Assembly: GCF_030144855.1 (NCBI RefSeq)
Contig: NC_082707.1
Span: 155,372,001-155,436,000 of the forward strand
Length of the DNA: 64,000 nt
DNA from: Hypanus sabinus
Taxonomy: Eukaryota
Direction: 5' to 3'
Positions within the stretch are counted from its first letter, which is position 1, and every line of letters begins with the position of its first letter. The translations under genes were made by a program, and so were the position numbers. Below, in pieces: positions 22,148 through 55,732 of the stretch. The notes under the pieces were generated by a model that worked only from the letters and a program-made list of their open reading frames with translations, searched no databases and was not told the origin of the DNA.

Positions 22148-22150
22148 ACA

Positions 22151-23062: not shown

Positions 23063-23085
23063 ACTTTAAACTAGTAAGATGGGGG

Positions 23086-32279: not shown

Positions 32280-32307
32280 GAGAACTCAATTATGAGGGGT
32301 GGAGTTT

Positions 32308-32317
32308 CAAGATGGCG
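32308..32317 (+). promoter_or_regulatory. YY1-type motif CAAGATGGCG at the L1 5' end (internal promoter)
   Basis: Element starts GGGGTGGAGTTTCAAGATGGCG, with AAGATGGCG at +14. YY1 consensus is AANATGGCG. Confidence 0.75.
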
Positions 32318-32467
32318 ACGTAGACATCTGCCTTTTAGGCACTCTTCATTTTTTAAGCTATAATCACCCTTTAATCAAATCTTTTCGTACTTAACTACAT
32401 GGGTTGATATTTACGATTTATTTCTTTTTTAAAAAATAATACTTGATTTAATTTTTTCAAACTTAAA

Positions 32468-33278
32468 ATGTCTGTACCTAAGAAATCGTCTAAAGACCCT
32501 GTATCTCTCGATGCAATCTCCAGTCTTCTGGATACTAAACTGGATACTAAACTTGCAAGTCTGGAAAATAAACTTACTGCGAAAATGTCTGAGCTTGAAG
32601 AAGTCGTTAGATCATTTGATACCAAGCTTCAATCGCTGGCAGCAGATATTGAACGGCATGAAGAAAAGTTTGCGGCTCTTGACAAGATAATTTGTGAAAA
32701 AATACGTACAATCGAAACTTTGGAGGAGAAGGTACGATTGACCGCTAAAATAGTGGAGCAGAATAAGTTTAAAATCACCGATCTTGAAAACCGATCTCGC
32801 AGACAAAACTTGCGTATTATTGGATTTCCCGAAAATGTTGAGTCTGGTGACTTAACTGAATATTTCTCTAACTTATTGTGGGAAATTTTTGGCGAGGACA
32901 CTTTGCGGGTTAAACCTACCCGGTGCCCACAGAGTTTCGGGATTTTCGGCTGCGAGAGACAAGCCACGAGCTGTGATTGTCCGTCTCCATTATCCTCAGG
33001 AGAAAGAGCTTTTAATTCGATTAGCTCGTCAGAAAGGTATGATTTCTCACAGAAACAAGAAGTTTCGTATTGTTGAGGATTATTCATTCGAGGTGATGAG
33101 GGCGAGAATCGCTTTTAAACCGGTGATGGCAGAGATTCATTCGATTGGACTTAAACAAGCTTTAAGATACCCAGCGAATCTTAGAATTACGTTGAGTGAT
33201 GACAGTCAGCGCTTCTTTAATACTCCGGAAGAAGCGAAGAAATTCGTTGAAGAATATCGGTCTTCTAGTACAAGTTGA
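32468..33278 (+). pseudogene. L1 ORF1p (coiled coil, RRM, CTD) with one frameshift near 32915
   Basis: Heptad-rich N-terminus, DLENRSRRQNLRIIGFPE, AHRV, PRAVIVRL, RIVEDYS, YPANLRI, FNTPEEA. Confidence 0.92.
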
Positions 33279-34240
33279 ACTATGTGTTATGTTGAAGAAT
33301 TTTTGGAGAGAAGACGCCATTCCGCTTTTAGGCTTTAACTTATGAAGCTGCGGTATAGCTTTTTACTTTGGCCTGTAGACCTGGTTTTTTTTTTATTATC
33401 ATGATTTACAGATGCTCTTTTAATTTTACTATAATGTTTTTTTTTAATTAAGTTTTTTTTTCCTCTGGATTAGATATACATGTTAAGATTTTGTAATAAT
33501 GATTTATTTTTTAAGATGTCGTTTCTTTTTCCCATAAGACTTTGCTTTCCGTAAGCGTTTATTTGCCTGTATTTGAGAATGGGACCAATGTTTTGAATTT
33601 TTGGACCTTTTTTTATATATATTGTAGTGGTTATTGAATCCTTTTTTAATCTTATTTTGATGACCTTTTTTTTAAAAAAAAGATTGGCGAATTTACATTT
33701 ATATTCTGTAATATGGTCCTTTCAAAATGTCGTTTCTTCTTCCCATAAGTCTCTGTTTTTGAAACGTCATTTTCTTATATTTGAATATGGAATCTTTTTT
33801 TAAAGGCATATTACACAACTTTAAACTTCAATGGTTATCCTTTTTTTGATTAATGATTTTTTGCTTTTTTATATTATTTTTTTCATTTTGATTGATATAT
33901 ATTCTTTCTTTTTACAACCCTGTATTTATATCTGGGTGTTATATAGTTTCTCTTTTCTTTCTTTTCATGGAGTTGCCATCTTGAAAATGGGGGTAATATT
34001 AGTATTAGTTCGTGCGCCTGCCGCTTGGCTCTTTTTCGAGGAGTTGGGGGGAGGGGGTAGGGATCTTTTTTCACGCTTTTGCTTTTTATTTTTTTGCTTT
34101 TAGTTTATGGGCCGACTTTAAATTATTAATATTGTTGAGTTGTCATGTTCTCCGGTTGCTCCTGAATCATTTTTCCTTCTTCCTGAATTATGGGTTATGT
34201 GTCTTTTTAACCTTTTATGATATACACAACTAATATTGGC

Positions 34241-37200
34241 ATGATGGATAAGTCTATTAACTTTATCTCTTGGAATACTAATGGTTTAAATCATCCGATT
34301 AAATGTAAAAAAATATTTAAAGTATTCCATAGACTAAACGCTAATATTATTTTTGCACAGGAGACCCATATTAGGAGGGAGGATAATCAACGTTTTTTTA
34401 GGTTCTGGAAGGGTCAACAATTTCACTCGAATTGTTCCGTCAAAATTAGGGGTGTGTCTATTTTTACAGACCCCTCAATTTCGTTTACACATCATGAAAT
34501 TATTTCTGATCCACAGGGCAGATTTTTGTTGATAACTTGTTCACTTTTTAATCGAAAAGTGGTTCCAGTTAATATTTATGCTCCAAACTTTGACTGCCCT
34601 GAATTTTTTAAACGTTTATTTACTTCCCTTCCTAATCTAAATGAATATATGTTGATAATGGGTGGAGATTTCAATTGTTGTTTGAATCCTTTGATGGATA
34701 GATCCAAACCTATCCGAATTCTTCCGAATAGATCAGCCTTACTTATTAATTCTTTTATGGTTGATTCGGGAATTACTGAAATATGGGGGTTTTTGAACCC
34801 TAAAGATAAAGAATTTTCATTTTTTTCACATGTATATCACAGTTATTCTAGAATTGATTATTTCCTTATTGATCATCGTTTATTAACCGATGTTACTGAT
34901 TGTAAATATGATTCTATTACTATTTCAGATCATGCACCTTTGAAGTTATCTATCAAGATTTCGGACTTTTCCAATAATACTAGATCTTGGAGACTTAACG
35001 CTACTTTGCTTCAAGACCCAGAATTTATCACCTACATAAAACAGCAAATTGACTTGTTTTTCTCAACAAACTATACTGAAGAGATTGACAGAGGAATACT
35101 TTGGGACTCTTTTAAGGCTTTTATCCGTGGACAAATTATCTCATATTCCGTTGGTAAAAGAAAACAAAGATATTTAGATATTGCTTTATTAGTGGATAAA
35201 ATTAAAGAAATTGATAAGATTTATTCCGTGACTCCTACCAAAAAACTTTATAAGAAGAGAGTTGAGCTTCAAATGGAGCATAGCTTATTATTATCTTCTT
35301 CAATTGAGAATCAATTAATTAGGACCAGGGCTCAATTTTATATCCACAGTGATTGAACTGGTAAACTGTTAGCTAATCAATTAAAAGCTATTTCGACTAA
35401 GCAACAAATTATTAAAATTCGTAAACAAGACGGTAATCTAACTACTGATCATAAAGAAATCACTAACACTTTTCAAGATTTTTATAAATCTTTATATCAA
35501 TTAGAATTTGATGGCGATCTGTCCATGATGGATAATTTTTTTAACAATTTGAATATTCCCAAACTGACAGATGAAGATCGTAGCTTGTTCGATGCTCCTA
35601 TCTCTATGGCTGAAATAGGAGAGGCTATCTCATCAATGAATTCAGGGGAAGCTCCTGGTCCTGATGGTTATATTATAGAATTTTTAAAAACTTTTTCTTC
35701 TTTGCTTTCCCCTTGGTTATGTGAAATCTTTAATGATGCATTTGCTAAGAAGAGATTACCTCAATCTTTTTATGAAGCTACTATCTCTCTAATTCTTAAA
35801 AAAGATAAGGATCCTACTTTATGTGCATCTTATCGTCCTATATCACTATTAAATGTAGACTCTAAGATTCTTACAAAAATTTTAGCCATTAGGTTAGAAA
35901 AGGTACTATCACAGATTATTTCAGAAGACCAAACTGGTTTTATTAGGAATCGGTATTCCTTTTTTAATGTTAGAAAATTGATTAATATAATTTATACTTC
36001 ATCACCCATAATCCCAGAATGTGTTATTTCATTAGATGCTGAAAAAGCTTTTGATAGAGTTGAATGGACATACTTATTTAACGCTTTGAGATATTTTAAT
36101 TTTAGTCCTAATTTTATATCATGGATCAAACTATTATAAACCTGTTGCTTCTGTTCTTACAAATAATTACAGATCCTCTTTTTTACAATTATCTCGTGGT
36201 ACGAGACAAGGTTGTCCCTTAAGTCCTTTATTATTTAATATCGCATTAGAACCTTTAGCCATTGCTATTCGTGAATCTCCTAATATTTTTGGTATTACCC
36301 GTAATGAGAAGTTATACAAGTTATCACTTTATGCTGATGACTTGTTGTTATATATTTCTGATCCTGACAGGTTTATTCCCGCTATTTTATCCTTGTTGGC
36401 TCAATTTGGTAGTTTTTCTGGTTATAAACTAAACTTGGATAAGAGTGATTTATTCCCTTTAAACGTGCAAACTTTATTGAATGATAGGATACCATTTAAA
36501 GTTGTTACTGATAACTTTATCTATTTAGGTATAAAAATTACCAAGAAATATAAAGATTTATTTAGACTGAATTTTTTACCTATGCTCCATCAAATTCAAC
36601 AACTTACTACAAAATGGTCTCCCCTATCCTTATCATTAGTTGGTCGGATTAATGCTATTAAAATGATGATTTTACCAAAATTTTAATATTTATTTCAAGC
36701 CTTACCAATTTTTATTCCTAAATCTTTTTTTGACAACATTGATTCAAAAATTTCCTCATTTGTGTGGCAAAATAAAAACCCCAGGTTAAGTAAAAGGCAA
36801 TTACAAAAATCTAAAAAAGATGGTGGTTTAGCTTTACCTAACTTTAGATTTTACTATTGGGCGAATAATATTCGTAACCTAATATATTGGAAATTAGATT
36901 TGGATTCACCATTGTGCCCACAGTGGGTAAATTTAGAATGCAATGAGGCACAGGGATATTCTCTATTCTCTGTTCTTGGTTCTTCTCTTCTTGCTGATTT
37001 AGTTAAATTCAATAAACAGATATCTAATCCTGTGTCAAACATAAATTACGAATTTGGTTTCAATTTCCTAAGTTTTTTACTCTGAAAAACTTTGTTCTTG
37101 ATAGCCCTATTTTACTTAATATTTTTTTCAAACCTTCTTTGACAGATCAAGCTTTTAGTATAAAATGTTTTCGTGATCTTTTTTTTGAAGGTAGTTTGAT

Positions 37201-38003
37201 GTCTTTCGACCAACTTTCCAACAAATTCAAGTTACCTAAATCTAATTTTTTTTAGATATTTACAAATCAGAAATTTTTTACATAAAGTTCTACCATCTTT
37301 CCCCAATTCAACTTCAATGGATTTCTCAGATTTGATTTTTACCTTAAATCCTTGTCAGAAGGGATTAGTGGCTTTTATTTATAATATGATTATGAAGATA
37401 CAACCAGAAATATCAGGTAGAATTAAACAAGAATGGGAAAAAGAACTTCAATATAATATATCAACAGAAAAATGGGAAAAAATTTTACAAATGGTTAATT
37501 CTTCTTCTATATGTGCTAAACATGCTTTAATACAATTTAAAATTGTACATAGAGCTCATATGTCTAAAGATAAGCTTGCTCGATTCTATTCTCATATTAA
37601 CCCTCAATGTGTCAGATGTCATTCAGATGTGGCTTCATTGACCCACATGTTTTGGTCATGTCCCACTTTACATAACTATTGGAAGGACATATTTGCTACC
37701 ATTTCCTCAATTTGGAATATCGATTTACAACCTCATTTTATTACTGCAATTTTTGGTCTACCAAATGAGGATGGTAATCAGTTTTCCCCTTCAATTAGAC
37801 GAATGATTGCTTTTGTAACATTAATGGCCAGAAGGTCTATATTACAAAATTGGAAAGAAGTAAATCCTCCTACCACGTTTCAGTGGTTCTCTCAAACTAT
37901 TTCTTATCTGAGCTTGGAAAAAATTAGAAGCACTATTTTTGACTCATCAATTAAATTTGAAGAAACTTGGGGACCGTTCATTCGACATTTTCATATGAAT
38001 TAA
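34241..38003 (+). pseudogene. L1 ORF2p (APE, RT, CCHC), disrupted
   Basis: SWNTNGLN, QETH, NIYAPN, GGDFN, YSRIDYF, SDHAP, APGPDG, YRPISLLN, LDAEKAFDRV, GTRQGCPLSP, YADD, CVRC...HMFWSC. Stops at 35354 and 36684 plus several frameshifts. Confidence 0.95.
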
Positions 38004-38579
38004 TTTGGCCTCTTCCAGACCTTCTCTCTGCTTATTCTTATTCAGGTATGGAGTTCCAGAGTTTTTGACACTATCATATACATATAAACTGTTATTATTG
38101 CCCATGTTAGTTTAGTTTAGTGTTTTTTTTCTCAATATATATTTTTTCTTGTATTTTTAATTTTTTTTCTTTTGATTATTATTTTTATTTTTTTCATATA
38201 TAATTATTTATAGGCTTGATTGATTAATGTACTATTTTTTGTTGATATTTTAATAGGATATTGTTATCTTATTATTAATGTAATTTCAAGTCTATTGCAC
38301 TTATAACCTATTCATTATTATGTTACGTTTTTTTTATATATGAAACTCAATAAAAAGATTGAAAAAGAAAAGAGAACTCAATTATGATTCTATACACAAA
38401 TCAACCTACTCCTGGGTTATGATTAAAATCAGTAGCCAATTTATTTCTTTATTTCTATGAAAATAGCAATATTAAAAACCTTACAATAACTTTTGCAAAA
38501 ACATTCTAAAGCTCATATTGGCTAAACATTGGAATTTACCATTGCTAAAATAATAAGGTACAAAGTTGCCATTATACCC

Positions 38580-38700
38580 TGGGGTCTCGGCCTGAAATAT
38601 CGACTGTACTCTTTTACCATAGATGCTACCTGGCCTGCTGAGTTCCTCCAGCATTTTGTGTGTGCTGCTTGGATTTCCAGCATCTACAGATTTTCTTCTA
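38580..38700 (+). mobile_element. Penelope terminal fragment with partial hammerhead, about 40 bp from a TALPID3 donor site
   Basis: gggtctcggcctGAAAtatcgactg...cctgctgagttcctccagcatttt, same family as 61238-61372. Confidence 0.75.
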
Positions 38701-38738
38701 TTTACTATTATAAATGTATCATGTAAAGATTCACCAAC

Positions 38739-38916
38739 CTTAATCAGAGGGGCAGTTGCAGCAATGGCTGCTGCAGTGGCAGCTGCTGTCGTAATGGAAT
38801 TGGAGTTACAGTTGTTCTCTCTAGCACCCTGTATAAATGACTTCTTGTCTTCAAAAGAAGGCTTCCGCAGAAGCTGTACTTTAACATTTTTTCCTTTGGG
38901 GTTACTCTGCAGTTTT
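38739..38916 (-). CDS. KIAA0586: KIAA0586/TALPID3 coding exon (178 nt, phase 2->0; KLQSNPKGKNVKVQLLRK...SITTAAATAAAIAATAPLIK)
   Basis: Pyrimidine tract ttctgtttccccccatttacacAG and AAG|GTTGGT donor. Contains the hallmark TALPID3 motif AAATAAAIA(T)A(A)PLIK. The ORF track shows only the wrong frames here. Confidence 0.95.
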
Positions 38917-39235
38917 CTGTGTAAATGGGGGGAAACAGAAACAACTTTGACATATAACCAGTTACTTTTTAAGTCTAATGTTATATCTATTTATAGTGTC
39001 TACTTTATGGTGAGTGAAGGAGAGATAAATGATGGAAATGTTTCTGCAGTATTTTTAAGCATTATATTTACATAGATCTGCTGCATATTAATACAAAACT
39101 AGCTGAAGTTACTTTAAAACAGCAACACGCATTACTTACCAAAAGAGATACCACTGTCTTTTCTAACAAGCAAATGCAAAAGAAATGGAAGTTGATGGGT
39201 GCAGTCTGTACAGCATGGTTACTAATAATGTCAAG

Positions 39236-39570
39236 GAGAGATCTCATTGAAATCTATCAGATACTGAAAGGCCTGAGTGGGTGCAGAGGGTGCTTCCATT
39301 AGTAGGAGAGCCTAGGACATGAGAGCACAGCCCAAGAATAAAGGCATGTCCTTTTAAAACTAAGATGAGGAATTGCTTCAGATATAGGGTGGTGACATTG
39401 TGGAATTTGTTTCTGCAGAGTGCTGCATAGGTCAAGTCATTGGGTGCATTTCTGGTTCTTGATTGGTAAGGGGTTTAAGGATTATGAGGTAAAGGCAGAA
39501 GAATAGGATTGAAAAATGAAATCAGGCACAGTTGAATGGCAGAGCCAAATAGTCTAATTCTGCTCCTATA
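39236..39570 (+). mobile_element. CR1 3' fragment
   Basis: DLIEIYQILKGL, HSPRIKACPFKTKMRN and the ctaattctgctcctata tail. Confidence 0.75.
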
Positions 39571-40159
39571 TGAAACAGACAAGGAGTATTAATAGCTAAA
39601 TCTGAGATAATTAGCATAGATTTGGAATTAAGATCAATAATGCACAAATTCCACTTCCGGGATTTCAACACTGAAGCAAAGAATTTAAGATCAGCTGAAA
39701 AAGGTCTTATTAAGGAAAAAATATCTATGGCAGAAGTTTTGTTTAAAGAATTATTTTAACTTGTAGTATCCATTGTAGACTAGGCAAGCTTCAAAATTTT
39801 CTTCTACAAGTTTTAAAGGTAAATTGATGTGATGATGCAAATCACTAATTGGCAGTTTATTAATATGCTTCACAAGTTGCAATTATCAATTATAGATTAT
39901 ATGTTTTAGCAACTGAAGGTCAAAATGCCCAGATTTCTAGGATTGAGTGAAATCTATGAATTCAATTTCTTTTAAGAAAATTAAAATTTTCCAATTATAT
40001 GGATTAATTGATTTTAATCAGTTATTCAACCACAGTAGTGGCATACTTTATTACAGCTTTATAATTTTCCAAAACTGAAATTTTATAACATAATTTCCAA
40101 CACTTGCAAAAATCTTTTTTTTTTCATTACCATTTCAACTGAGGAAACATGACAACTTT

Positions 40160-40400
40160 ATTTAGATTTACAGCATAGTAATAGGCCTTTCTGATCCAAT
40201 GAGCCTGTGCCATTTAAGTGTACACAGGTGACCAATTAACCTAACCTATGCATTTTTGGAATATGGGAAGAAACTGGAGCATCCTGAGGAAACTCACGTA
40301 GTCATGGGGAGAAGTAGAAACTCCTTACAGACAACAGCAGAATCGAACCGGAATCGCTAATGCTGTAAAGCATTACTCGAACCATCATGCATCCATATAC
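40160..40400 (-). mobile_element. V-SINE (HE1-like) copy
   Basis: Reverse complement has a B-box-like GGTTCGATTC followed by the V-domain gtctgtaaggagttt..ttctccccatgact.cgtg.gtttcctc.gg.tgctcc.gtttc.tccca. Confidence 0.8.
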
Positions 40401-41849
40401 CACCCTAAAAACTAAAATCATGAATAAAACTTTAAAAATTTGATACAGTTTACTCAAAATTTAAATTTCAAGGTTTACTGCATGAGATGATTTGATAACT
40501 GGATCATGGAATTTTTTAAGAAAGTATTTTTTAAATTTAGTATCAGAATAGTAATGAATGTACCTGGATAGCAGTGGAATCTTGAAGGCCAATTTGCTCA
40601 TTCCTGCTCCTATTCTAGTTAAGTATCATTTAGGCAACAACTATAATTAATTTGTGCCAATGCATCGTTTCCACATAATATATATCATTCTGTGTAATAA
40701 TTTGTCAATCTGACATTAACACAGACCAACTGTACAAATGCTTTTGCCTTTATCTAAGCATTGCTTTATTCATTAATAGATGGTAAGACACCTCTTTAGG
40801 TTAAAACATTGAATGAAAGGATATTGCTCTAAGAAGCTGCATTATTACACACTTAGCTTTTCCACAATGCACCAACACTGGACTTCTCAGTTGCAGGAAA
40901 TATACATCTAGAATCAATGCTGTTAAACTCTTTAAGAATTACATTTCTAAGAGATCACCTAAATAAGACTATCAGCTTCTCAACCAAATGAACACAAAAA
41001 TCATTTAAAGAACACAGTTTATCAATCAAGTAGCATAAATGATATTTAAATTTATTACAAAGAATCCAAAAAATGCTTCAAAGAGAATCAAAAGAAATAA
41101 TGTGAGCAAAACAGAAATTCTGCAATGTGTTTTAACTTTTAAATATTAATTTTACTAAAATAAGATTCATGCATGTCAAATTAAATCCAATATCTCCAAG
41201 CCTATCTGGCATAACCTCCACTCTCTAATTTTTTCCAACATTCTACAAAGATAATGCCTTATAGTACTTTCAGAATCACTCTTCCAATCCATTACAGAAA
41301 ATACATTTTAGCTCCTCCCCTCTTTGTATCCATGATCCCCAATTATCAATGCCAGAGAAGTAACAATTTACTTGCACTCCTTTCAGTTAGTACACTATAT
41401 CCACTACTCATAATATTGTCTTCTGCACACTGGGAAGTACTGAACAAGCACAGATAGGGTGACTACTGTTGTTACTGTGATCAAAATCACTGGGACATAT
41501 GCCAAAATGTGTTGATTGTGTCCAGGACCAACGACCCCACCCATCTATCTGACTGGGAATGGACCTTGCCGCTGAGTTAGGCTTTTATTTACAAATAAAG
41601 ATTAGCTTTGTATGTCCCATGTGCAAGTCCGTACCTACACTTGTATTCAGTGTTTGCATCATAACTTTTTGTGTCTGTATATTAGCTTCTTGCGAATTTT
41701 GCGAGGAGTCACCCTGCTCCAATTACAGCTCAAAGCCCGTCAGTTATTATTTGGATTAATTAATTGGATTATTTGGATAGTATTCTCTTTTGTTGTGTCC
41801 CTCCAAAAATGGACCATTTTGCAATTTAGTTCGTTATGCCTATGTAGAG

Positions 41850-42890
41850 ATTAAAGATTAGTTTTATTTGTCACATGTACATTGAAGCATCCGGTGAAAT
41901 GCTTCATTTGTGTCAACGACCAACATAGCCTGCAAGTGCTTCTGGTGCCGACATAGTGTACCCACAACTTACTGACTCTAACCCATATGAATTTGAAGTG
42001 TGGGTGGAAACCGGAGCACCAGAAGGAAACCCATGGTCTTGTCAAGAATGTGCAACGTTCTTCCTGACATCATGGATTGTAGGGGTATGGAGGCTATAGT
42101 CCCGGTGCAGGTTGATGGAAGGAGGCAGTTAAATGGTTTCAGCATGGACTAGATGGGCCAAAGGGCCAGTTTCTGCCTGTTTCTGGCATGTACTTTTCTA
42201 GGACTCTGTCAGTGGGAAGTGAACCTGGGTCATGGGACCTAATCAAGAATCTATCAACATTTTCTTTAAATATACCTAATATCTTGGCCTGCACAGCCTT
42301 TTGGGATAACAGATTCACATAACAGTGAGATGTGTCGATTGTGTCAGGGATGTGCTGGGGAAACCTGCAAGTGTTATCATACGTTACAACATAACATGGT
42401 GACAACTTACTAATCCTATCCCGTACGAAACTGGAGCACCCAGAAGAAACCCACATTGTCACGTGGAGAATGTGGCACTATGGTGGCATAATGGTTAGTG
42501 CAACACTACTACAGCACAGGGCCTCGGTTTTCAGAGTTCAGTTCCAGCACTGTCTGTAAGGAGTTTGTACGTTCTCTCCTTGACTGCCTGGATTTCATCC
42601 CACAGTCCAAAGATGTACTATTTTGTAGGTTAATTAGTCTTTGTAAATTGTCCCATGATTAGGTTAAATAGGTGGGTTACTGCGTAGAAGTCTGCACTCT
42701 ATCTAGAAATTAATGTAATATGTATTATTAGATTATTTATATATTTCTTATTGTAATTTATAGTTTGATTTTTATGGGGAGAAGGCTGGGAACTGGGGTT
42801 GAGGAAGGAAAAAAAGGATCAGTCATGATAGAATGGCAGAGCAGGTTCGATGGGCCAGATGGCCTAATTCTGTTCCCGTGTCTTATGGAG
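41850..42890. mobile_element. Cluster of V-SINE (HE1-like) copies and CR1 tails in both orientations
   Basis: Minus V-domain at about 42000-42060 and 42425-42470. A plus copy from about 42475 has A box TGGCATAATGG (42484-42494) and B box GAGTTCAGTTCC (42534-42545). CR1 tails at about 42070-42195 and 42775-42890. Confidence 0.75.
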
Positions 42891-44121
42891 AAGCACTGAA
42901 GGAATCTTTAATCAGCAGGCATTCTTGTGATGACACTTATGTTAGAGTCTCACAAACCCATAGTACATTACATTTTATACCTTTAAGATCAAATGTAACA
43001 AGCAACTGATACAATGTAATTTCAATGATTACAATGACATCATTTACTTCAATATTTTGGGTTGACAATGCCTCCTTTGAACTACATATGACAGTGGAAG
43101 AAACCTCTAATGTTCAAACACCCATGCTGGAACAAACGTATTGACAAAAAACAGCTGAAGACACAGCCAGACACCTGAGTACACAATACATCAGCTATTG
43201 ATTGGAACTATAGCTGTGACCATGTTTGATTTGCTAAGTGACAACATCAGTCTGGTTTGCCAGCTTGAACTCAAGTCTTGATGGTGCAAATAACTTAGCC
43301 CATGTTGCCTGGTTTGATGCAGGGCCAATGATCATAACCTCCCATTGTCTTAATGTTTGGTTGATGCATATGCAAACATCTCATGGTCACCATTTTGCAA
43401 ACCATCTGTCTTAGTCTGTGGGCAACCTATGCTCCACAGACAATGCAAAGACATACTTTTAACTTCAATCTACTGCTTGCATTTTACAATCCACATTAAG
43501 AAATGAAGCTGTGGTTCTTGTTTAAATTAATTGCTGCCAATATTCACGCAACTCAAGAATACTCCCTAACAATTGCTTTGCAGAACACTTCCATTGTCAG
43601 AGGCATCATCTTTCAGAGGAGATATTAAACTTAAGACCTTTAACTACTCTATTACATCGATGTTTCAGAATCCACAGCACTACTCCAAGTAAGGGCATGA
43701 TGCTCTGGTGATATTTATTCCTTAAATCATCAAACAAAATAAAATTATCCAGATATTGTTGCTCAGCGAGCTTGCTATGCACAAATTAACAGCACCATTT
43801 TTCATGGATAAATTTTAAAGTGGTTAGAAATTATTTGGAACATTGAGATCCTCAAAAATCTTAGCTAATGCAAGTTTTTGCATCAATGGAGATGAACTTT
43901 GAATCAATTAGGACACTAGTTTAAAGTATGCCTGCTGGCATACTGAGGTAGCACATTAAAAGCAATTAAATTTTAACAAACATCTCTTACATCTCTTACT
44001 GTTCACAGAAATTACATTATTGAACAGGAATTTAACTAATGATATAACCACAGTCTATGTTGCTTCTTTCACCCTAAAAAAAATTGAATGGGCTGTTAAA
44101 AATGACCATTTTGTAACTTAC

Positions 44122-44188
44122 CGCTGAACAATAGCTTTCACTGCTTCATTTTGTCCTCCAGTGTAGTGGGAGATCAAAATATCATTTC
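44122..44188 (-). CDS. KIAA0586: KIAA0586/TALPID3 coding exon (67 nt, phase 1->2; GNDILISHYTGGQNEAVKAIVQR)
   Basis: tttcAG acceptor and CG|GTAAGT donor. Peptide resembles recalled vertebrate TALPID3 [24 protein letters not shown]. Confidence 0.88.
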
Positions 44189-44442
44189 CTGAAAGGTATA
44201 CAAATTCATTTTATACCTTTTGCAACTACCACAGCAAATAGCAAAAAAAAATTATTCTTCAACATATGTCATTGATAATTCATGTACTGCCAAAAGGTTT
44301 GCAAAACAGAAAATCAAAATATTGTAATTACAACTAATGAAATTTACAACAGCAATCTATGATCTGATTTATTTTCTTCAGTCTATAACACAACTACTGT
44401 CTCATAAAAACATTACATGCAGATAAAATTATAAACAAGTAA

Positions 44443-45337
44443 TTTGGATGACACGACGATGCTTGGCTTCATCAACAACGATGTGTCAGAGTACACCGAG
44501 GAAGTGGAGTGGATGCAGGACTGGTGTGAGAAAAACAACCTAAATCTGAACATGGAGAAGACTAAGGAAATGATTGTGCACTTTCAATAGGTTCAGATGA
44601 ACCATCCCCCCTCTACAAATACATGGCTCCTCCATAGAGAGAGTTAAGTGCACCAAATTTCTGGGAGTCCACATCATGGACAACCTCACCTGGTCCTTCA
44701 ATATCACCTTTCTGAATAAGAAGGCACAGCAACACCTCCATTTCCTGAGGATATTAAGGCAAGTGAGGCTTCCCTTCTCTCCCCCCACCCCATCTTAACT
44801 GAATTCTACAGGTGCACCATTGAGACTGTCCTGACAAGTTCTATCTCCATCTGGTATGACAGCAACAGAGCATCAGACCGTTAGTCCCAACAAAAGACTG
44901 TAAATATGGCCAAGAGGATCATAGGGGTCTCCCTACCACCCAACAGGGATATTTACCAGGAGCACTGTGTACAGAGGGCACTGAGCATTATCAAGGATCC
45001 TACCCATTCATCCAGCATTCTCTTTAGCATTCTACCATCAGGCAGGAGACTCCGATGCACAAAGACAAGAACAGTCAGGATGGGAAACAACTTCTTCCCT
45101 CAGGCCATTGGGCTTCTGAACTTCCTGCAACATCACATTCGAAGTGTCACCAGATAATTTGTACTGTACCCTACAATACTTAATGTATGCACTTTACTAT
45201 GTTTATCTACCAGCAATTCATTTGTAAATTTAATTTTTAAGCTATTGTGCATTATATGTACTACAGTGCTTTACACTTTGGTCCAGGGAAATGTTGTCTC
45301 GTTTGTTGGTATATAGTTAAATGACAATAAACTTGAC
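44443..45337 (+). mobile_element. Rex1/Babar LINE 3' portion
   Basis: DDTTMLGFI, KTKEMIV.F, KFLGVHIMDNLTWS, ILPSGRRLR..RMGNNFFPQAIGLLN. Ends aataaacttgact. Confidence 0.85.
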
Positions 45338-46344
45338 TAGAGGTTTAATTCTTCATAGAAGAGGCCTAGGCCCAACCATCTTCAGTTGCTTCTTCAATGA
45401 GCCTCCTTCCAATGCATACACAAGAATAGATATAGTTACTGATGATTGCACAAAGTTAACTTCCATTTACAACTCTTCAGTAAATTAAAAACCATACAAT
45501 ATTCAGGCATGGGCTGATAAATGCAAGGTGCATTCCACAAACAAGAAAAAGGCAATGACCAATTCCAGCACGTTATATTTTAACTACCTGTTAATCACCA
45601 GAATATACCAGATAATCAATGGCATTACCATTATCAAGAGGCCCACCATCAACACCCTGGGTTTACCACCAAATATAAACACAATCACCCACCTGGATAA
45701 CTCATAAAAACTATGGCAAAAACTAGGTAGCTTGCAATAAATGACCTATCTCATGATAGCCCAAAACCCTTTCACTACCTACAAGCACTATGTCAACAGA
45801 ATGACAGAATACTCTCCACTGGCCTGGATGACCACAGTTCCAACAACAATCGAGAATGTGCTTGACAGGCTCCTATCTGCCAGACTAAACATATATTGCC
45901 TTTGTCACCAGTGCACCATGGCTTTAGTATATGTAATTTGCCAAACTGCATATTACAGAATTTGAGTGCATTTGTTCACATGGGATACTCCATTTGTTAT
46001 CTGCCTAGCCCACGAAACTTGGGAACAGCACCACTTCAAGGTTCCTCTCCAAGTCATACACATTCTAATGTGTGGGAAAAAAATTTCCATGTGTGCCAAA
46101 ATCAATAGTTTACTGCCATCCTCAGGAATATAAGTGCTGGGCAACAAATGTCTTGCCTGCAAATGACAAATTAGAAAACTGAATAGAACATAGAACAGTA
46201 GAGCACAGCACAGGTCCTTCGGCTCACAATGTTGTGCCAACCTTTTAACTTACTCCAAGATCAATTTAGCCATTTTCTCCCACATAGCCTTCCATTTTTC
46301 TATCATCCGTGTGCCTGTCTAACAATCTCCTAAATGTCCTGGCA

Positions 46345-46815
46345 GTGCTTTCCATAAACTTACCTTTGGGGTCCTCCCTTGGTCAGGATCAACCATAGCA
46401 TCCTCGCTGTCTAAGTGATACACAAGACAATGCACAAGGCAGGCTACTATGATCCACAGCAGGCTCCCCCTCACCACACAGTTGATGAATCCAAAGGAAC
46501 AGCAGAGACTGATACAGTCTGGCACCAGCAGCTTTGCAGTCGTCAACATAGGACTCTCTTAGGGACTCCAGCTCTGGATTTTTCCTTAGGCTTTACTCCC
46601 AAAGCCTTCCCTAAGAGTGTATATAGCCGCAAGGCAGTGGAGCTTTGAGATCAGAGTTTTCTTTCTCCTAGATGAGCTGCCATGAAAAGTCCCATCTGCC
46701 TGAAGTAACTGGTTTTAAGGTGCCTTTTCCTCTTCTTCTGTCAATAGAAATGGTTCCACTGGGCTTGGTAGCTAAGTCACACATGAAGGCCAGGAGCTGG
46801 ACTTAGTTGTCAAAG
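46345..46815 (-). mobile_element. RTE-related non-autonomous element
   Basis: Non-coding. Carries the recalled RTE 5'-region motif (minus: GGCAGCTCATCTAGGAGAAAGAAAACTC) and is homologous to 55733-56310. Confidence 0.6.
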
Positions 46816-47477
46816 TGCAAAGTTTAAATTAAGCACATACAGTATACCATATATAACCTTGAGATTCATCTCCTTTCAGGCAGCCACAAAACAAAGAAAC
46901 CTAACAGAAACCATTGAAAAAAGTGTCAAACATCCAATGTGTAGAAAAAAAACAAATTGTATAAATCAGTAAAAATAAGCAAATAACATTCTGAACTGAA
47001 GTTCACAATAATGAGTCCACATCCACGAAGCCAGTCATCAATACAGCTGATCCAAGAGTCCATTAGTTACAGCCCAAGCTTCAATTCCACAGAGAGTAAA
47101 CCTCATGGAGCAGTGAGCTGAACACTGGCCTGTCCCTCGCCTTGGGCCCTGACACCTTCAGTGCTGCACATTCAAGACTTCAATTCACACTACAAAAATG
47201 CCAGGTGGTTCAAAAGCTCAACTCCGAAAAGGAAGTTACAGGCTATTGATTTTGGTGATAGTATCTGAGAAAAAGAGTGATTAATACAGTAATTTATATT
47301 TTTGTCTGTTACCAGCAAGTCATCACTGTGCATCACCAGCTCCCTCTTAAACTGGAAGCTAGGAAAGAGTCTATTTGAGATGCACACCACTGGGAGTATT
47401 TATTAGGTAGTAGAGCTTATTCCCACTACCTCCCTGACTATGACAATCTTAAGGAGCCAAATAAATGTGCTGGCTGC

Positions 47478-49950
47478 CTCTCTATCTATGTCTCTTATCA
47501 TCTTATATACCTCTGTCTAGTCACCTCTCATCCTCCTTTGCTGCAATGACAAAAGCCTAACATGCTCAACCTTTCCTCAAAAGATATGCTCTCTAATCCA
47601 GGCAATATCCTAAAACATCTCCTCTGCACCCTTTCTAAATATTCCAAAGCCTTCCTATAATGAGGTAACCAGAACTGAACACATACTCCAAGTGCATTCT
47701 AACCAGAGATTCATAGAGCTGCAACATTACCTCGTGATTCTTGAACTCACCCCCCCCCCCCCAAACTAATGAAGGCCAACACACCATATGGTTTCTTAAC
47801 CACCCTAACAACTTGCATGGCAACTTTGAGAAATCAGTGGACTTGAACCTCAAGAAATCTCTGCTCTCTTCCTCCACACTATTAAAAATCCTGTCATTAA
47901 CATATTCTGCCTTCGTTAGATCTTCTAAAATGAATAACTTCACATTTTCAGAGACTGAAATCCATTTGCCTCTTCTCAATTCAGCTCTCCATTCTATCCT
48001 ATTGCAACCTATGCCAACCTTCTACACTATGTACAACACTACCAACCTTCATGTCATCTGCAAACTTACCAACCTACCATTCCATTCCATCATTCAAGTC
48101 ATTTATAGAAAATCACAAGCAGCAGTGGTCCCAAGACAGATCCCTGTAGAACACCAGTAGTTACGGACCTCCAAGCAGAATACACTCCATCTACGACCAC
48201 ACTCTGCCTTCTGTAAGCAAGCTAATTCTGAATCCACACAACCTAGTTTCGCTGGATTCTTTGTCCCCAGACCTCAGAATGAGACTACCAAAAGGAATCT
48301 GCTTGAATGCCATAATAAAACCTATACACATCACATCCACTGCTCTACCTTAATTAATTTAGTCACTTTCTCGAAAAAGTTCATCAGGCTCATGAGGTCT
48401 GACCTGCCCCTCTTAAAGCAACCCTGACTATCTCTAATCAGACAATGCTTCTCCAAGTGCTTGTAAATTGTGTCTCTAAGAATTTTCTCCAAGACTCACT
48501 GCTCTATAATTCCCAGGATTATCCCCATTAGCTTTCTTGAAAAAAGGAATAAAATTTGCCATCCTCCAATCTTCTGCGACTAATCCTGTGGGTACTGAAG
48601 AAGCAAAGATCATCATCAACTTCCAATCAATCTTTTCCCTCTTCACTAGTAACCTAGGATATATCCCATCCTGCCTCAGGGACACATCCATCCTAATGTT
48701 TTTTAAAAAGTTCCAAATCATCCTCTTCCTTAATCACAACATGTTCCAGCATATTAGCCTGTTCTGTACTGACTTCACATATGTCAAAGTCTCTCTCACT
48801 GCTGAATACAGAAGCAAAATATTAATTGAAGACCTCCCTGACTTCCTTTAACTCCAGGCATGTTTCCTCCTTTATCCCTGATCAGTCTTACAGTCTTCAT
48901 TCAGTTCTTTACATGTGTAAAACACACTGGGGTTTCCTTACTTCCATTTGCCAAGGCCATCTCATGTCCCCTTCTAGCTCTCCTAAGTCCAAGCTCTTTC
49001 CTGGCTAACTTTTAAGTCTAAAGAGCCCAGTCTAAACCTCAAGTATATTTCTTCCTCTTCTATCCCTCTTTCATGGTTCCATGCCTCAATGGGACAGACC
49101 TACCGATAACCCCATGAAAGTAACAACATGTACATTTCTACTGTACATTTTTCGGAGACATCTGTTCCCAATTTACACTTCAAAGTTACTGCTTAGTAGC
49201 ATAATTAGCCCTCCCCCAATTTAACACTTTTCCATACTGTCTGCTCCTATCCCTATCCAAGGCTATGCTAAAAGCTAAGGAGCTATGATCGCTATCTCTG
49301 AAACGCTCACCCACAGAGGGTGCTGGCATCACATCAGGTTTTTTACCTACTACTAGATCCAGTATGGCCTCTTCTCTAGTCAGCCTGTCCACATATTGTG
49401 TGTCAGGAATCCTATTTGGACACATCTAACAAATTCTGCCCCATCTCATACTAAAGAGGTGCAAGTCAATATTAAGGTAGTTGAAGTCTCCTATGACAAC
49501 AACCCTGTTATTTTCACACCTTTCCAAATTCTGCCTACCGATCTGCTCTTCAGTGTCTCGATTCCTACTGGGAGGCCTATCGAAAACTCCCAACAGGGTA
49601 ATTTCTCCCTTCCTGTTTCTGACTTCCACCCATATTGACTCAGTAAATCATCCCTCCACAAGGTCCTTCTTTTCTGCAGCTTTGATACTATCCTTGATTA
49701 GCAATGCCACTCCCACACTTATTTTACATCTCTCCCTATCCCTTTTGAAACATTTGAAACCCCAGAACACTCCTGCTCTTATGACATCAAAGTCTCCGCA
49801 ATGGCCACAACATCATAGTTCCATATTCTAAGTTCATCACCCTTGTTCCTGATACTTCTTGGATTAAAGAAAATACATTTTAACCCATCCGAGTGCAATC
49901 GTACCCTATCCACTGCCTATCCTTCCTCACAGTTTATCTACGCATCGCAC
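47478..49950 (-). mobile_element. Degenerate CR1 LINE (EN through RT, internal deletions)
   Basis: GVFDRPP, VIGDFNY, ILDLV, DSDHSS, EDWRMAN..PFFKK..DNPGNYRAVSL and VMLQLYESLVRMHLEY on the minus strand. Confidence 0.88.
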
Positions 49951-50431
49951 CTACCTTTAAACCAGCTCTTCCCCTACCACTGTGGTTCTCACAGAATTTA
50001 CTCACAGAAGTACCGTTTAACAGATAGAAAGCAGTAAAAATAACACAGGTCATTTTCAAGTTGGGAAGGATTGGTACTGAGGCCTCAGTTATTCATAATC
50101 CCTATCAATAATTTGGATAAATCCAACTTTGCAAACGATTCTATGCTCCCTGCTTCCTTGTCCACTGAGCAATGGTCAGGAGTCAACAGGGCTGTGAGGA
50201 GGATATGGAGGGACTTGCCTATATAACACGTTAAGTGAATGAGCAAGATGCAATGTCCATTTCAGAAGAAAAATGGTGAGAGATTGAAAGGTACTAGTGT
50301 TTATAAGGACCTGGATATCCTTATGAATTACTTAAAACACAGCATGCAATTAAGATGACAAACAACAAATGGATTACATTACAGAAGAATTTGGGTAGAA
50401 AGGTAGAGATATCTTGCTCCAATTATATCAT

Positions 50432-52825
50432 TCTTTCTTTTTCAATCTTTTTATTGAGTTTCATATATATATATAAGAAAAAACATAACATAATAATGAA
50501 TAGGTTATAAATACAATAGACTTGAAATTGCATTAATAATAGGATAATGATATCCTATTAAACATCAACAAAAAAAGGTACATTAATCAATCAAGTCTAT
50601 ATAATTATATATGAAAAAAACAAAAATAATCGTCAAAAGAAAAGGAAAAAAATTTGAAAATACATAAAAGAGAATATATATTGAAAAAAAACACTAAACT
50701 AAACTAACATGGGCAATAATAACAGTTTATAAGTATATGATAGTGTCAAAAAACTCCAGAACTCCATACCTGAACAAGAATAAGCAGAGAGAAGGTCTGA
50801 AAAAGGCCAAATTAATTCATATGAAAATGTCGAATGAACGGTCCCCAAGTTTCTTCAAATTTAATTGATGAGTCAAAAATAGTGCTTCTAATTTTTTCCA
50901 AACTCAGATAAGAAATAGTTTGAGAAAACCACTGAGACGTGGTAGGAGGATTTACTTCTTTCCAGTTTTGTAATATAGACCTTCTGGCCATTAATGTTAC
51001 AAAAGCAATCATTCGTCTGATTGGAGGGGAAAACTGATTACCATCCTCATTTGGTAGACCAAAAATTGCAGTAATAAAATGAGGTTGTAAATCGATATTC
51101 CAAATTGAGGAAATGGTAGCAAATATGTCCTTCCAATAGTTATGTAAAGTGGGACATGACCAAAACATGTGGGTCAATGAAGCCACTTCTAAATGACATC
51201 TGTCACATTGAGGGTTAATATGAGAATAGAATCGAGCAAGCTTATCTTTAGACATATAAGCTCTATGTACAATTTTAAATTGTATTAAAGCATGTTTAGC
51301 ACATATAGAAGAGGAATTAACCATCTGTAAAATTTTTTCCCATTTATCTGTTGATATATTGTATCGAAGTTCTTTTTCCCATTCTTGTTTAATTCTATCT
51401 GATATTTCTGGTTGTATCTTCATAATCATGTTATAAATAAAAGCTACTAATCCCTTCTGACAAGGATTAAAAGTGAAAATCAAATCTGAGAAATCCATTG
51501 AAGTTGAATTGGGAAAAGATGGTAGAACTTTATGTGAGAAATTTCTGATTTGTAAGTATCTAAAAAAATTAGATTTAGGTAATTTAAATTTGTTGGAAAG
51601 TTGGTCAAAAGACATCAAAGTACCTTCAAAAAAAAATCACGAAAACATTTTATACCTTTCCTTTTCCATATGCTAAAAGCTTGATCTATCAATGAAGGTT
51701 TGAAAAAAAAATTAAGTAAAATAGGGCTATCAAGAACAAAGTTTTTCAGAGTAAAAAACTTACGAAATTGAAACCAAATTCGTAGTGTATGTTTGATAAC
51801 AGGATTAGATATCTGTTTATTGAATTTAACTAAATCAGCAGGAAGAAAAGAACCAAGAAAGGAGAATAGAGAATATCCCTTTACCTCACTACATTCCAAA
51901 TTTACCCACTGTGGACACAATGGCGAGTCCAAATCTAGTTTCCAATACATTAGGTTACGAATATTATTCGTCCAATAGTAAAATCTAAAGTTAGGTAAAG
52001 CTAAACCACCATCTTTTTTAGATTTTTGTAATTGCCTTTTACTTAACCTGGGGTTTTTATTTTGCCACACAAATGAGGAAATTTTTGAATCAATGTTGTC
52101 AAAAAAAGATTTAGGAATAAAAATTGGTAAGGCTTGAAATAAATATAAAAATTTCGGTAAAATCATCATTTTAATAGCATTAATCCTACCAACTAATGAT
52201 AGGAATAAGGGAGACCATCTTGTAGTAAATTGTTGAATTTGATGAAGCATAGGTAAAAAATTCAGTCTAAATAAATCTTTATATTTCTTGGTGATTTTTA
52301 TACCTAAATAGATAAAGTTATCAGTAACAACTTTAAATGGTATCCTGTCATTCAATAAGGTTTGCGCGTTTAAGGGGAATAATTCACTCTTATCTAAGTT
52401 TAATTTATAACCAGAAAAACTACCAAATTGAGCCAACAAGGATAAAATAGCGGGAATAGACCTGTCAGGATCAGAAATATATAACAGCAAGTCATCAGCA
52501 TAAAGTGATAATTTGCATAACTTCTCATTACGGGTGATACCAAAAATATTAGGAGATTCACGAATAGCAATGGCTAAAGGTTCTAATGCAATATTAAATA
52601 ATAAAGGACTTAAAGGACAACCTTGTCTCGTACCACGAAATAATTGAAAAAAAGAGGATCTATAATTATTTGTAAGAACAGAAGCAACAGGTTTATAATA
52701 TATTAATTTAATCCATGATATAAAATTAGGACTAAAATTAAAATTTCTCAATGCATTAAATAAGTATGTCCATTCAACTCTATCAAAAGCTTTTTCAGCA
52801 TCTAATGAGATAACACATTCTGGGG
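50432..52825 (-). mobile_element. 5'-truncated L1 (2394 bp), same family as 32296-38371, sense to TALPID3
   Basis: Perfect 17-bp TSD TGCTCCAATTATATCAT at 50415-50431 and 52826-52842. ORF2 is open except for one homopolymer frameshift near 51630. AATAAA on the minus strand at 50450-50455. Inserted at the end of an old CR1 relic (about 50050-50430). Confidence 0.97.
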
Positions 52826-55732
52826 TGCTCCAATTATATCATAGGTAATTTTTTTTTAAATGGGATCAAAGATAATGGACTTCTATTTCAGTTTGGGGGA
52901 TTCAGATATAAATGATGAGGGAACATTAGTTTCTTTCACAGATGTGCTGTATTGTGCTGTAGGTTTTCTATGGTGCAGGAGCTAACCAACAGGATAAATG
53001 GATTAGTAGTTTGAGAAGCGGCATGTTCCTTCCACCATCTACACCAAGCTTGTATGTTCCCATTGCAAACGTTCTATAGCACCAGAAACCTATCAATACT
53101 TTTGGGAAACGATGGGTGAATTCTAGTTCATAATACTTGGAATCCAGCCTCTAAATGTGCACAAAGATATCAACTGCTTACTGCACCTCAACTACCAAGG
53201 ATGGGTGACTTCAGTTCCGAAGTGCAAATCCTGGATATTGTCCAATTTTCCCATTATTCTTGCAGATTAGCTCCAATCCAGCAGAAGCTTGTTGGAGTTC
53301 AGATACGTGATAGAGTCTGGATTGTAGTGAAATAGACTAAAAAGTGTTGGGTTTTCACTAAGATTGTCTCTGTTGTGAGCCTGTTGGTTAGGATTGTAGC
53401 TGGCATGCCATCATGAAGCAAAACTGAGATAAACTTGAATATACTGAACCCTTATGGATAGAGGTCCAAAAATTTGCCACCATCTGAATGAAGAATTTTC
53501 TTCACATTCGGTCAAGCATATCATGACATATACCAATAACTAATTTATTTTGTTTTATCTATCATCATGGCCCCAAAATATCTGTGTTAGCAGAAAACAT
53601 TAACACAAAAAAATCATACTAAAACTCTCAAGAGCCCTGCTGCTCTTTTAGACAGTGCTTCACAGAAAAAGGTTAACTCCTAGCCAAAAGGAGCTACAGA
53701 GTATTCATGACTTAGGATTTAATAAATTAATTGCCCTGTAATTCAGCATATTTTGCCTCTGTGTAGAGATTCTGCTTCTGTACCAAAACCCAGAATGTTT
53801 GCTGAGAATAACAAGGAAATCCAGGGGTTAATAATCTCAAATGGAAATTGTTCCTGAATTGGAAGCCACCATGTCTCAAGTGAAAAGTAAAAACTTTACA
53901 GACACCTGATTGCCAAGGTCTAGCAGAAAATCAGTAACCTAAAACTACAGTAAGCAGGAGACTTAACTTGCTGACAACCATAATATGCATAGGGTTCTCA
54001 GCATTATTCATGTTATTTAAAGGCCAAACTTTCAAGGCCACACCCAATGAAAACCAAAAACAACTAAATTTATCAGAGATAGAGTGGTATTCAACATCGA
54101 CTGAAAGGAATATATCAACAATAACGCTATCCTTGATGTGAACAACTTGGACTATATCCTACAGCAACCTATCTATATGGTTCAACCTCATTCTCACTTG
54201 TGACCAATAAGAAGCCTAAAAGATAAATAAACTATTTTTAAAAATGAAAATAAATTTAAAAAATAAAGTCAACTGAAAAAAAAACACATTGTAAGCAGAT
54301 TATATTGGAGCTGAAGTTCTTGAACCTAATTATGTAAGGCTCTAAAGAGATTACAACAGGAATATTGTGAAGTCTCCTAACCCAAACTTGTGATAAAAGT
54401 TAGTGCAGCAAGAGTTAACTAGATTGATTCCTGAGTTGACCATATGAGAACGGACAATGAACACAGATGACTGAATCAAGCAGCACAAGAGATGAACTTG
54501 ATGGAAACAATAAGAAATTCTTACGAAGCTCAACAAGTTAAATATGGAGATGATATTTCCCCAAAATGAATTATTTGAACCAAAGGTTTTACCTCAGGGA
54601 ATGGAGTCAGTCATATTGTATAGTGATGAAAAGAAATATTTTCACTCAGAGAGTACTGAGTGACTATAGCAACTCATTCATTTACTTTTTCCAAGACATA
54701 CATTTATAGAAATTTGAACATTCTGGGAACCAGGAAAAATGGTGCTCACATAAAAGATCAGTGAAAATCTCCTAACAGCACAGTAAGCACAAGATTGAAT
54801 TACCTAGAACAGCTTCTTTTCCTTCTATAGAGAATGAATAGGAAGTGCCTATTTTCTTTAAAAGAAGGATTGATGAAAAATCAAGCATTTTATTTTCATA
54901 GTTATTGGTAGAAAAACTAGATGGGAATGAAATAATTTTTTTTTCACTCAGAGGACTACAACTCATGGTCTCAAAGAGCAGCTGACACTCATACTTAATG
55001 ACTGTAAATCAAATGGATGGAAACCAAATATTCTGAAGCAGCAGAGAAATATAGGAATCCACATATAGGAATGAATGTAAACTGTGCACAAGAATTCCCA
55101 AAGGCTGATGGAATATTAACCTTTCTCTCATGGAATTTTCAGTGCACACGGATAAAATTTATATCATAGGCTTACAGTATAAATAGTCCTGGTCTTTGCA
55201 ACAGTCTTAAGAACACTGGAGTGAGTTCAGAGCATCTCTCTCTGGGAAACATTTACTGACATTATAGGAGACAGGGCATTTACTCATCAGATTACAATAG
55301 GGCAAAAAATAGATTCAAACAGGCAAGTTGAAAAGACCTTGCATATATTTGCTTCAGAGTAAAAGATGACAGGTCTAATTAACCTCTTCAAAAGGATGAA
55401 TGATTTGAAAGGATATAATGGATGAGTGAGTTCAAAACATTGAAGCATAAACGTAAAATTAAAACTAGCCTCTTCACATGCAAGTGTAAAGTTGGAACAC
55501 TGATTACCTAAATGGTATTGCAGGTGGGTACACAGAAAAATTCAAAACTACTTGCCAATTTTTAAAGGGCAAGTATTAAGGATCAAGAAATCATTAGGTT
55601 TCATTAGGTTGGAGTAAATGAAGATGTCACAGATGAAAATAATATAATTTAATGTGAAGTTTGCAAGAGCTAATTGCATTCCTGTTTCAGCTTTCAAAAT
55701 TAATTAAATACTGCAACACCAAGAATACCATC

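Follow-up and report, generated by a model that had tools for sequence, protein, structure and literature searches.

Exons of TALPID3 (KIAA0586) lie on the minus strand of the window (the whole stretch of DNA analysed, 64,000 nt). The gene was recognized by matches to Pfam PF15324 on two exons (56 and 39.9 bits), and its closest database relative is a Mobula protein; 79 aa match 'protein TALPID3' of Mobula birostris at 99% identity. Six exons are collinear with the Mobula TALPID3 protein by tblastn; the four that concern us here are provisionally labeled E2 to E5 (Table 1). E3 (21 aa) gave no Pfam match and was placed by alignment to residues 123-147 of Mobula TALPID3 (92% aa identity). E4 matches PF15324 positions 22-80 (E=1.7e-10) and was also matched to Mobula TALPID3 by tblastn; a database search with the open frame around this exon returned a sole match, which was SINE-derived and lay in an unrelated Mobula protein. 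E5 matches PF15324 positions 81-154 (E=2.4e-15) and is 99% identical to Mobula TALPID3 residues 207-285. Splice boundaries at E3 and E4 are canonical AG/GT, and the introns flanking the E3-E4 pair measure 12.7 and 10.4 kb. The donor at 56916 and the acceptor at 28327, which the original prediction had named as the neighboring splice sites, were confirmed by Mobula alignment and splice context. Orthologous TALPID3 genes range over 550 kb in Mobula and 237 kb in whale shark. Searches of the window for Rfam RNA families and for tandem arrays found none.

The two introns flanking the E3-E4 pair each carry an L1 copy, and both copies belong to one L1-clade LINE family of the endonuclease and reverse transcriptase type. 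The left copy is full-length and antisense to TALPID3. Its ORF2 (~34217-38003) encodes an endonuclease (PF03372 Exo_endo_phos, 28.2 bits, cut-off 24.5; 34217-35356), a reverse transcriptase (PF00078 RVT_1, 63.6 bits; 35525-36139) and a C-terminal zinc-binding domain (PF13966 zf-RVT, 29.5 bits, cut-off 27.5; 37317-38003). Its ORF1 (~32468-33275) has a coiled-coil-like N-terminal part and a match to PF02994 Transposase_22 that falls just below the gathering score (E=3e-4, 21.5 bits against 22.4). The right copy is sense to TALPID3 and cut to 2395 nt at its 5' end, as L1-clade copies often are, and each copy is flanked by a perfect 16-bp target-site duplication (TSD), another mark of the clade. 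With fish L1-clade LINEs the ray element shares the apurinic-type endonuclease, the reverse transcriptase, the C-terminal zinc-binding domain and 16-bp TSDs; the sub-cut-off match makes an L1 RNA-binding-type domain in ORF1 a candidate further likeness. A protein search with the 403-codon frame of the right arm returned teleost L1-like reverse transcriptases as the best relatives, at only 50-58% identity. Where mammalian L1 is A-rich, this element is T-rich on its sense strand (38.8% T against 30% A). A 3' poly(A) tail is absent from both copies, and instead of a long poly(A) tract a short A-rich ending (GATTGAAAAAGAAA) directly adjoins the duplication; short or non-poly(A) tails are found in some non-mammalian L1 lineages.

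Both L1 copies are dead. By open-frame mapping, the left copy carries one frame change in ORF1 and two in-frame stops plus three frame changes in ORF2, and the right copy consists of open frames of 403 and 274 codons split by one frame change near 51618-51636. L1-driven premature polyadenylation was considered and rejected, poly(A) hexamers being near compositional expectation (36 vs ~28; 8 vs ~6), as was L1 exonisation, for which no consensus donors were found in the L1s.

Table 1. Features around the TALPID3 exons and L1 copies (window coordinates).
Feature	Position	Strand	Description
Left L1 5' target-site duplication	32280-32295		GAGAACTCAATTATGA, exact 16-mer recurring at 38372-38387
Left L1	32296-38371	+	6076 nt: 5' UTR, ORF1, ORF2; in intron downstream of exon 38739-38916
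Left arm	36012-38371	+	Section of full-length L1 common to the truncated copy: ORF2 C-terminal two-thirds and 3' UTR
Left L1 3' target-site duplication	38372-38387		Exact 16-mer, same as 32280-32295
Right L1 target-site duplication, 3'-end side	50416-50431		GCTCCAATTATATCAT, exact 16-mer recurring at 52827-52842
Right L1 / right arm	50432-52826	-	2395 nt, 5'-truncated; in intron upstream of exon 44122-44188
Right L1 target-site duplication, truncated 5'-end side	52827-52842		Exact 16-mer, same as 50416-50431
TALPID3 exon E2 (provisional)	56916-56991	-	76 nt; donor 56916 for would-be skip isoform
TALPID3 exon E3 (provisional)	44122-44188	-	67 nt; acceptor ...tttcag/GAAATG, donor TCAGCG/gtaagt
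TALPID3 exon E4 (provisional)	38739-38916	-	178 nt; acceptor ...cacag/AAAACT, donor ATTAAG/gttggt
TALPID3 exon E5 (provisional)	28091-28327	-	237 nt; acceptor 28327 for would-be skip isoform
SINE-like repeat	38581-38696	+	43 nt from E4 donor; two inverted partners upstream of E2 (57504-57551; 61249-61363)

The shared section of the two copies was compared by global alignment. Arms 36012-38371 (+) and 50432-52826 (-) are 95.0% identical over 2355 aligned bases (2238 matches; 117 mismatches, made up of 92 transitions and 25 transversions; 11 indel events), or 94.6% identical when indel events are counted, and identical runs reach 175 bp. The pair scores 3531 bits, while every other repeat pair in the 64-kb window scores at most 113 bits. 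The inverted repeat that the original prediction had placed at 36012-38371 and 50432-52825 is present, with its right end one base further out (52826). Its length of about 2.4 kb held, but 'near-identical' overstated the 95% identity; the claim of almost the same ORF2 C-termini was borne out by 96% identity over 250 aa of translated sequence. The left element had been taken to begin at 36012; it begins at 32296, and 36012 marks only the point from which the 5'-truncated right copy matches it. Likewise, each copy does have its own perfect TSD, both of 16 bp, although that of the left copy lies at 32280 and 38372 and not at 36012. Substitutions between the copies fall 17/22/46 by codon position (p=2e-4), a skew which indicates that part of the 5% divergence predates insertion and arose in an active L1 lineage. 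This pre-insertion part fits two different source elements.

Separate perfect 16-bp TSDs and differing 5' extents bear out the earlier view that the L1s are independent insertions. They also count against two rival origins, inverted segmental duplication and an artefact of assembly, for which nothing speaks beyond the similarity of the copies. The TSDs differ from each other and each is perfect over 16 bp, one copy is full-length and the other is truncated at 52826, the flanks are unrelated, and the 5% divergence comes with 11 indels. Duplication or artefact was rejected on the separate TSDs and the 5% divergence, and we accord it a vanishingly small probability; that the two copies are an assembly error is very unlikely.

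Because the L1 copies are oppositely oriented, they form an inverted repeat around E3 and E4, two constitutive coding exons. The bracketing of these minus-strand exons by arms in the flanking introns was confirmed together with their AG/GT boundaries, and the left arm was found to end 367 nt from the E4 donor, against a predicted distance of about 370 nt. The right arm lies 6.2 kb from the E3 acceptor, and the arms are ~12 kb apart. Their orientation makes them complementary in the TALPID3 pre-mRNA, with a predicted duplex of ~2.4 kb and both exons looped out. Predicted pairing is 96.9% including G-U wobble, with a longest unbroken run of 182 bp, and the summed duplex energy is predicted at ~-3490 kcal/mol compared with ~-560 kcal/mol for shuffled partners. 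A search for a second reverse-complementary match between the same two flanking introns found none. As judged in silico, the layout is the classic one from which back-splicing and A-to-I editing are expected: the locus combines reverse-complementary flanking-intron arms, internal exons, canonical splice sites and long flanking introns, as circRNA loci do, and the long intramolecular double-stranded RNA that makes an ADAR substrate is seen as an in silico prediction, 96.9% paired.

The inverted L1 pair around the TALPID3 exons is a real yet ordinary arrangement. It reflects two separate insertions of the same L1 family, most likely in an incidental, essentially neutral configuration that gives at most trace by-products and is not a regulatory device, a reading based on general knowledge of circRNA yields and not on data from the TALPID3 locus. 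Once transcribed, the two arms could fold together into a long imperfect duplex with a ~12-kb loop holding E3 and E4. Editing and back-splicing from long intronic duplexes are well established, and where the duplex forms, promiscuous A-to-I editing of the arms would be expected along with low-level back-splicing that joins donor 38739 to acceptor 44188 in a 245-nt circle, and possibly low-level exon skipping. Most transcripts would probably escape these effects: the upstream intron and the first arm could be removed while the polymerase is still ~8 kb short of completing the second arm, and duplexes of this kind are further weakened by helicases and editing. Against the neutral reading, the unusual length and strength of the duplex, its being the sole inter-intron match and the 367-nt distance to the donor favor a larger effect than assumed.

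The original prediction went considerably further, proposing that the L1 duplex could cause E3 and E4 to be back-spliced substantially into a 245-nt circRNA, skipped together, or both, with a frameshift, nonsense-mediated decay and lineage-specific TALPID3 dosage as the outcome. Complementary arms in both of the long flanking introns (12.7 and 10.4 kb), canonical splice sites, the lack of a competing match between those introns and a mechanism established in other animals (PMC8516420, PMC8330042) all speak for such a switch. So does the reading frame: the two exons sum to 245 nt and skipping them shifts the frame, as had been claimed, with the 56916-28327 junction reading GSE-stop, three codons past the junction; dropping E3 or E4 singly is frame-shifting too, and an early stop follows. 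Weighing against the switch, there are 6.2 kb between the distal arm and the acceptor, and the upstream intron is spliceable before the second arm has been transcribed. Such repeat pairs usually yield little back-splicing relative to linear splicing, circRNA output as a rule not exceeding a few percent of the linear output. Loss of TALPID3 is severe in vertebrates and strong loss of an essential gene is selected against, so an insertion of strong effect should not persist; moreover, the Mobula protein retains both E3 and E4 in conserved form. We consider a switch of this kind quite improbable. A ray-lineage-specific two-exon TALPID3 circRNA accompanied by frame-shifting skipping that lowers the dose of an essential cilia gene appears somewhat less probable again, and 'dosage control' is an extrapolation for which the sequence offers nothing in support. 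Were that combination real, a cartilaginous fish would have a splicing switch built from L1s and not from SINEs.

The same arms might also act on the DNA. Homologous recombination between them would invert the 12-kb two-exon segment, leading to structural polymorphism or occasional null alleles; inverted repeats are established mediators of inversion, and here two 2.4-kb arms of 95% identity, with exactly matching stretches of up to 175 bp, are set 12 kb apart. A longest identical run of 175 bp is, however, at or below what efficient ectopic recombination usually requires in vertebrates, and the exon order of the reference is intact and collinear. Inversion has an extremely slim chance of being the main consequence of the pair.

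The locus can be set beside known systems in which intronic repeats flank exons. circRNA loci are accompanied by young transposon pairs, lineage-specific and mostly SINEs, in their flanking introns (Gruhl et al. 2021, PMC8516420). Like the inverted Alu or other SINE pairs around circRNA-forming exons of mammals, and like the species-specific young-transposon 'dimers' of that study, the ray pair consists of reverse-complementary copies of one young lineage-restricted family in the long flanking introns of an AT-rich gene, with looping of the pre-mRNA expected. It differs in that its arms are L1 and ~2.4 kb, where mammalian circRNA arms are SINEs of roughly 100-300 nt, in that one arm is 6.2 kb from the splice site, and in that the host is a cartilaginous fish and the circRNA a prediction. 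Complementary matches can favor back-splicing and skipping alike (Cao 2021, PMC8330042), and in C. elegans zip-2, as would be the case in the ray, complementary intronic sequences lie around exons, with circularisation and skipping coupled. The zip-2 match is 13 nt, conserved and required by deletion test, whereas the ray match is a recent transposon pair seen in sequence. The orthologous human gene can yield circRNAs, circKIAA0586 (circ_0102233) being formed from exons 22-23 (PMC12059312); this circle involves other exons, another species and other flanking repeats, and is uninformative on the two 5' exons of the ray.

As it stands, the locus is a further example of a common transposon by-product. 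If the duplex forms in vivo, nature would have supplied a clean test case, a single very long L1-derived pair and no competitor, that could gauge the reach and strength of transposon pairs on essential-gene splicing outside mammals. Exact element ends, TSDs, exon phases and predicted junctions are now available for use with ray RNA-seq. Separately from the L1 pair, the SINE-like repeat next to the E4 donor and its inverted partners upstream of E2 make up another complementary pairing, weaker than that of the L1s, whose downstream member shares its intron with the left L1.

Two L1 copies in opposite orientation form an inverted repeat at the site originally predicted, and an inverted-repeat scan, BLAST and global alignment agreed on this. 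The scan (34-55 kb) returned 5 collinear pieces (36013-38192 against 50622-52824, 85-96% complementarity), which BLAST merged into a single 2398-column match between the left and right arms. Percent identity was obtained by aligning 36012-38371 globally to the reverse-complemented 50432-52825, which gave 2238 matches, 117 mismatches (92 transitions and 25 transversions) and 44 gap columns in 11 events. Near-identity over about 2.4 kb had been claimed; the length was borne out, but identity over aligned bases was 95.0%. The arms were by far the strongest repeat pair (3531 bits; others ≤113) in a self-comparison of the whole window, in which no N occurs.

The left copy had been taken as a 2.4-kb element beginning at 36012, which proved too short. 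Reverse-transcriptase coding persists upstream of this position on the same strand, followed still further upstream by open frames resembling ORF1 and endonuclease. The 16-mer GAGAACTCAATTATGA lies after the 3' end (38372-38387) and was found once more at 32280-32295. These two sites form a perfect 16-bp target-site duplication and delimit a full-length L1 of 6076 nt (32296-38371, +). Pfam matched Exo_endo_phos, RVT_1 and zf-RVT, and an L1 RNA-binding-type domain at 21.5 bits, just below the 22.4 cut-off. The left L1 is dead, with 1 frame change in ORF1, and in-frame stops at 35354 and 36684 and frame changes near 36131, 37032 and 37246 in ORF2. At 38.8% T, 30.0% A and 31% G+C, its sense strand has a T-rich composition, the reverse of mammalian L1, in which that strand is rich in A. 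It landed at the extreme end of an older SINE-like repeat (32150-32295), whose conserved core is the same as in the copy at 38581-38696.

The right copy (50432-52826, minus strand) is 5'-truncated and bounded by the perfect 16-mer GCTCCAATTATATCAT (50416-50431 and 52827-52842). It retains long frames of 403 and 274 codons on either side of a single frame change (near 51618-51636), and carries fewer disabling lesions than the left copy. Each copy thus has its own perfect duplication, as proposed (16 bp in both cases), but the left 5' duplication is at 32280 rather than next to 36012. Since duplications and 5' ends differ and flanks are unrelated, the two are independent insertions, as had been argued. 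The ORF2 C-termini are nearly alike, with 96% identity over 250 residues. Both copies lack a long poly(A) tail and share a short A-rich motif at the 3' end. The closest database relatives of the reverse transcriptase were teleost L1-like proteins (50-58% identity).

The three codon positions were unequally affected by the substitutions that separate the copies (17, 22 and 46; chi-square p=2e-4), so part of the 5% divergence arose under selection in an active lineage, before at least one of the copies inserted. The 3' UTRs differ by 8.3% (32 substitutions in 386 nt). We infer post-insertion decay of at most about 3% for both copies combined. In relative terms, "young" is a fair description. Differences between 36012-38371 and 50432-52826 were strand-asymmetric: the L1 sense strand showed 70 of C/T but 22 of A/G type, and just 12 of all 117 lay in a CpG context.

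The host gene is encoded by the minus strand. The 79-residue exon 28091-28327, used as query in an exhaustive search, retrieved a 1587-residue protein (99% identity) named TALPID3 in Mobula birostris and M. hypostoma. By tblastn of the Mobula protein against the window, six exons were mapped in order at 78-97% amino-acid identity, the lowest value (178-nt exon) coming from an alignment that overruns the exon boundary into the intron. The host is thus a relative of Mobula among the rays, not Mobula itself.

Exons of TALPID3 and SINE-like repeats in the window
Feature	Position	Strand	Evidence or location
TALPID3 exon	56916-56991	-	tblastn, Mobula TALPID3
TALPID3 exon (67 nt)	44122-44188	-	tblastn, Mobula TALPID3
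TALPID3 exon (178 nt)	38739-38916	-	tblastn, Mobula TALPID3; Pfam PF15324 (profile positions 22-80, E=1.7e-10)
TALPID3 exon	28091-28327	-	tblastn, Mobula TALPID3; Pfam PF15324 (profile positions 81-154, E=2.4e-15)
TALPID3 exon	about 20601-20810	-	tblastn, Mobula TALPID3
TALPID3 exon	about 18168-18341	-	tblastn, Mobula TALPID3
SINE-like repeat	38581-38696	+	43 nt downstream of 38739 donor
Inverted partner of SINE-like repeat	57504-57551	-	upstream of exon 56916-56991
Inverted partner of SINE-like repeat	61249-61363	-	upstream of exon 56916-56991

Splice sites are canonical, and the linear reading frame is open across the 67-nt and 178-nt exons and the exon on either side. It is lost on omission of either inner exon or both; the predicted 245-nt frameshift was arithmetically correct, with double-skip translation giving GSE, then a stop. 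Because TALPID3 is read from the minus strand, its transcript would carry the right L1 fragment in sense and the left L1 in antisense orientation. As described, they flank the exon pair: the right fragment lies within the 12.7-kb intron that precedes the 67-nt exon, the left L1 within the 10.4-kb intron that follows the 178-nt exon. The proximal ends of both arms are L1 3' ends, 6.2 kb from acceptor 44188 and 367 nt from donor 38739 (about 370 nt predicted). The arms were predicted to pair at 96.9% of aligned positions including G-U wobble (longest uninterrupted run 182 bp), and the computed duplex energy, summed over segments, was about -3490 kcal/mol, whereas shuffled partners gave about -560. 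In a sensitive inverted self-search (28-64 kb), nothing else linked these two introns, and the remaining matches from one intron to another all joined the SINE-like repeat to its partners.

A layout such as that of the L1 pair is classically linked to back-splicing. Flanking introns of circRNAs are marked by young, lineage-specific transposon pairs, mainly SINEs (PMC8516420), and circularisation as well as skipping can be favoured by complementary matches (PMC8330042). Human KIAA0586 yields circRNAs from exons 22-23 (PMC12059312), whereas the ray candidate comprises the 67-nt and 178-nt exons. That the pair controls TALPID3 dosage, as originally predicted, is nevertheless very improbable. From established knowledge and inference, the first arm may be removed with its intron, about 8 kb being untranscribed before the second is complete; long duplexes are weakened by RNA helicases and editing; circRNA yields are usually small; and a strong reduction in the output of a cilia gene that is essential would not be expected to last. 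On these four considerations, the pair is read as an incidental outcome of L1 activity that yields trace molecular by-products at most.

The SINE-like repeat and its inverted partners (84-88% identity over 48-118 nt) form a second candidate pair, this one Alu-sized, that might favour circularisation or in-frame skipping. Such a pair would enclose 3 exons of 76, 67 and 178 nt, whose sum of 321 nt is divisible by three. Beside the 178-nt exon, a translated SINE-derived minus-strand frame (38484-38620) matches part of an annotated PTPMT1 isoform X2 from Mobula hypostoma (78% identity, covering 19% of the query), suggesting that this gene model includes an exonised copy of the same SINE.

Elsewhere, open-frame fragments at 58776-59671 (-) resemble a decayed Tc1/mariner-type transposase (Pfam HTH_Tnp_Tc3_2, 26.9 bits, under the 31.5 cut-off). 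Frame fragments at 47500-49700 (-) and 62800-63750 (-) show endonuclease-like and reverse-transcriptase-like motifs and by eye resemble remnants of other retroelements; Pfam gave no match for them at E≤0.01. Local GC skew was strong at 22001-26000 (+0.40 to +0.46), 48001-50000 (-0.38) and 62001-64000 (+0.39); no tandem arrays were detected in these regions, which are probably old strand-biased repeats.
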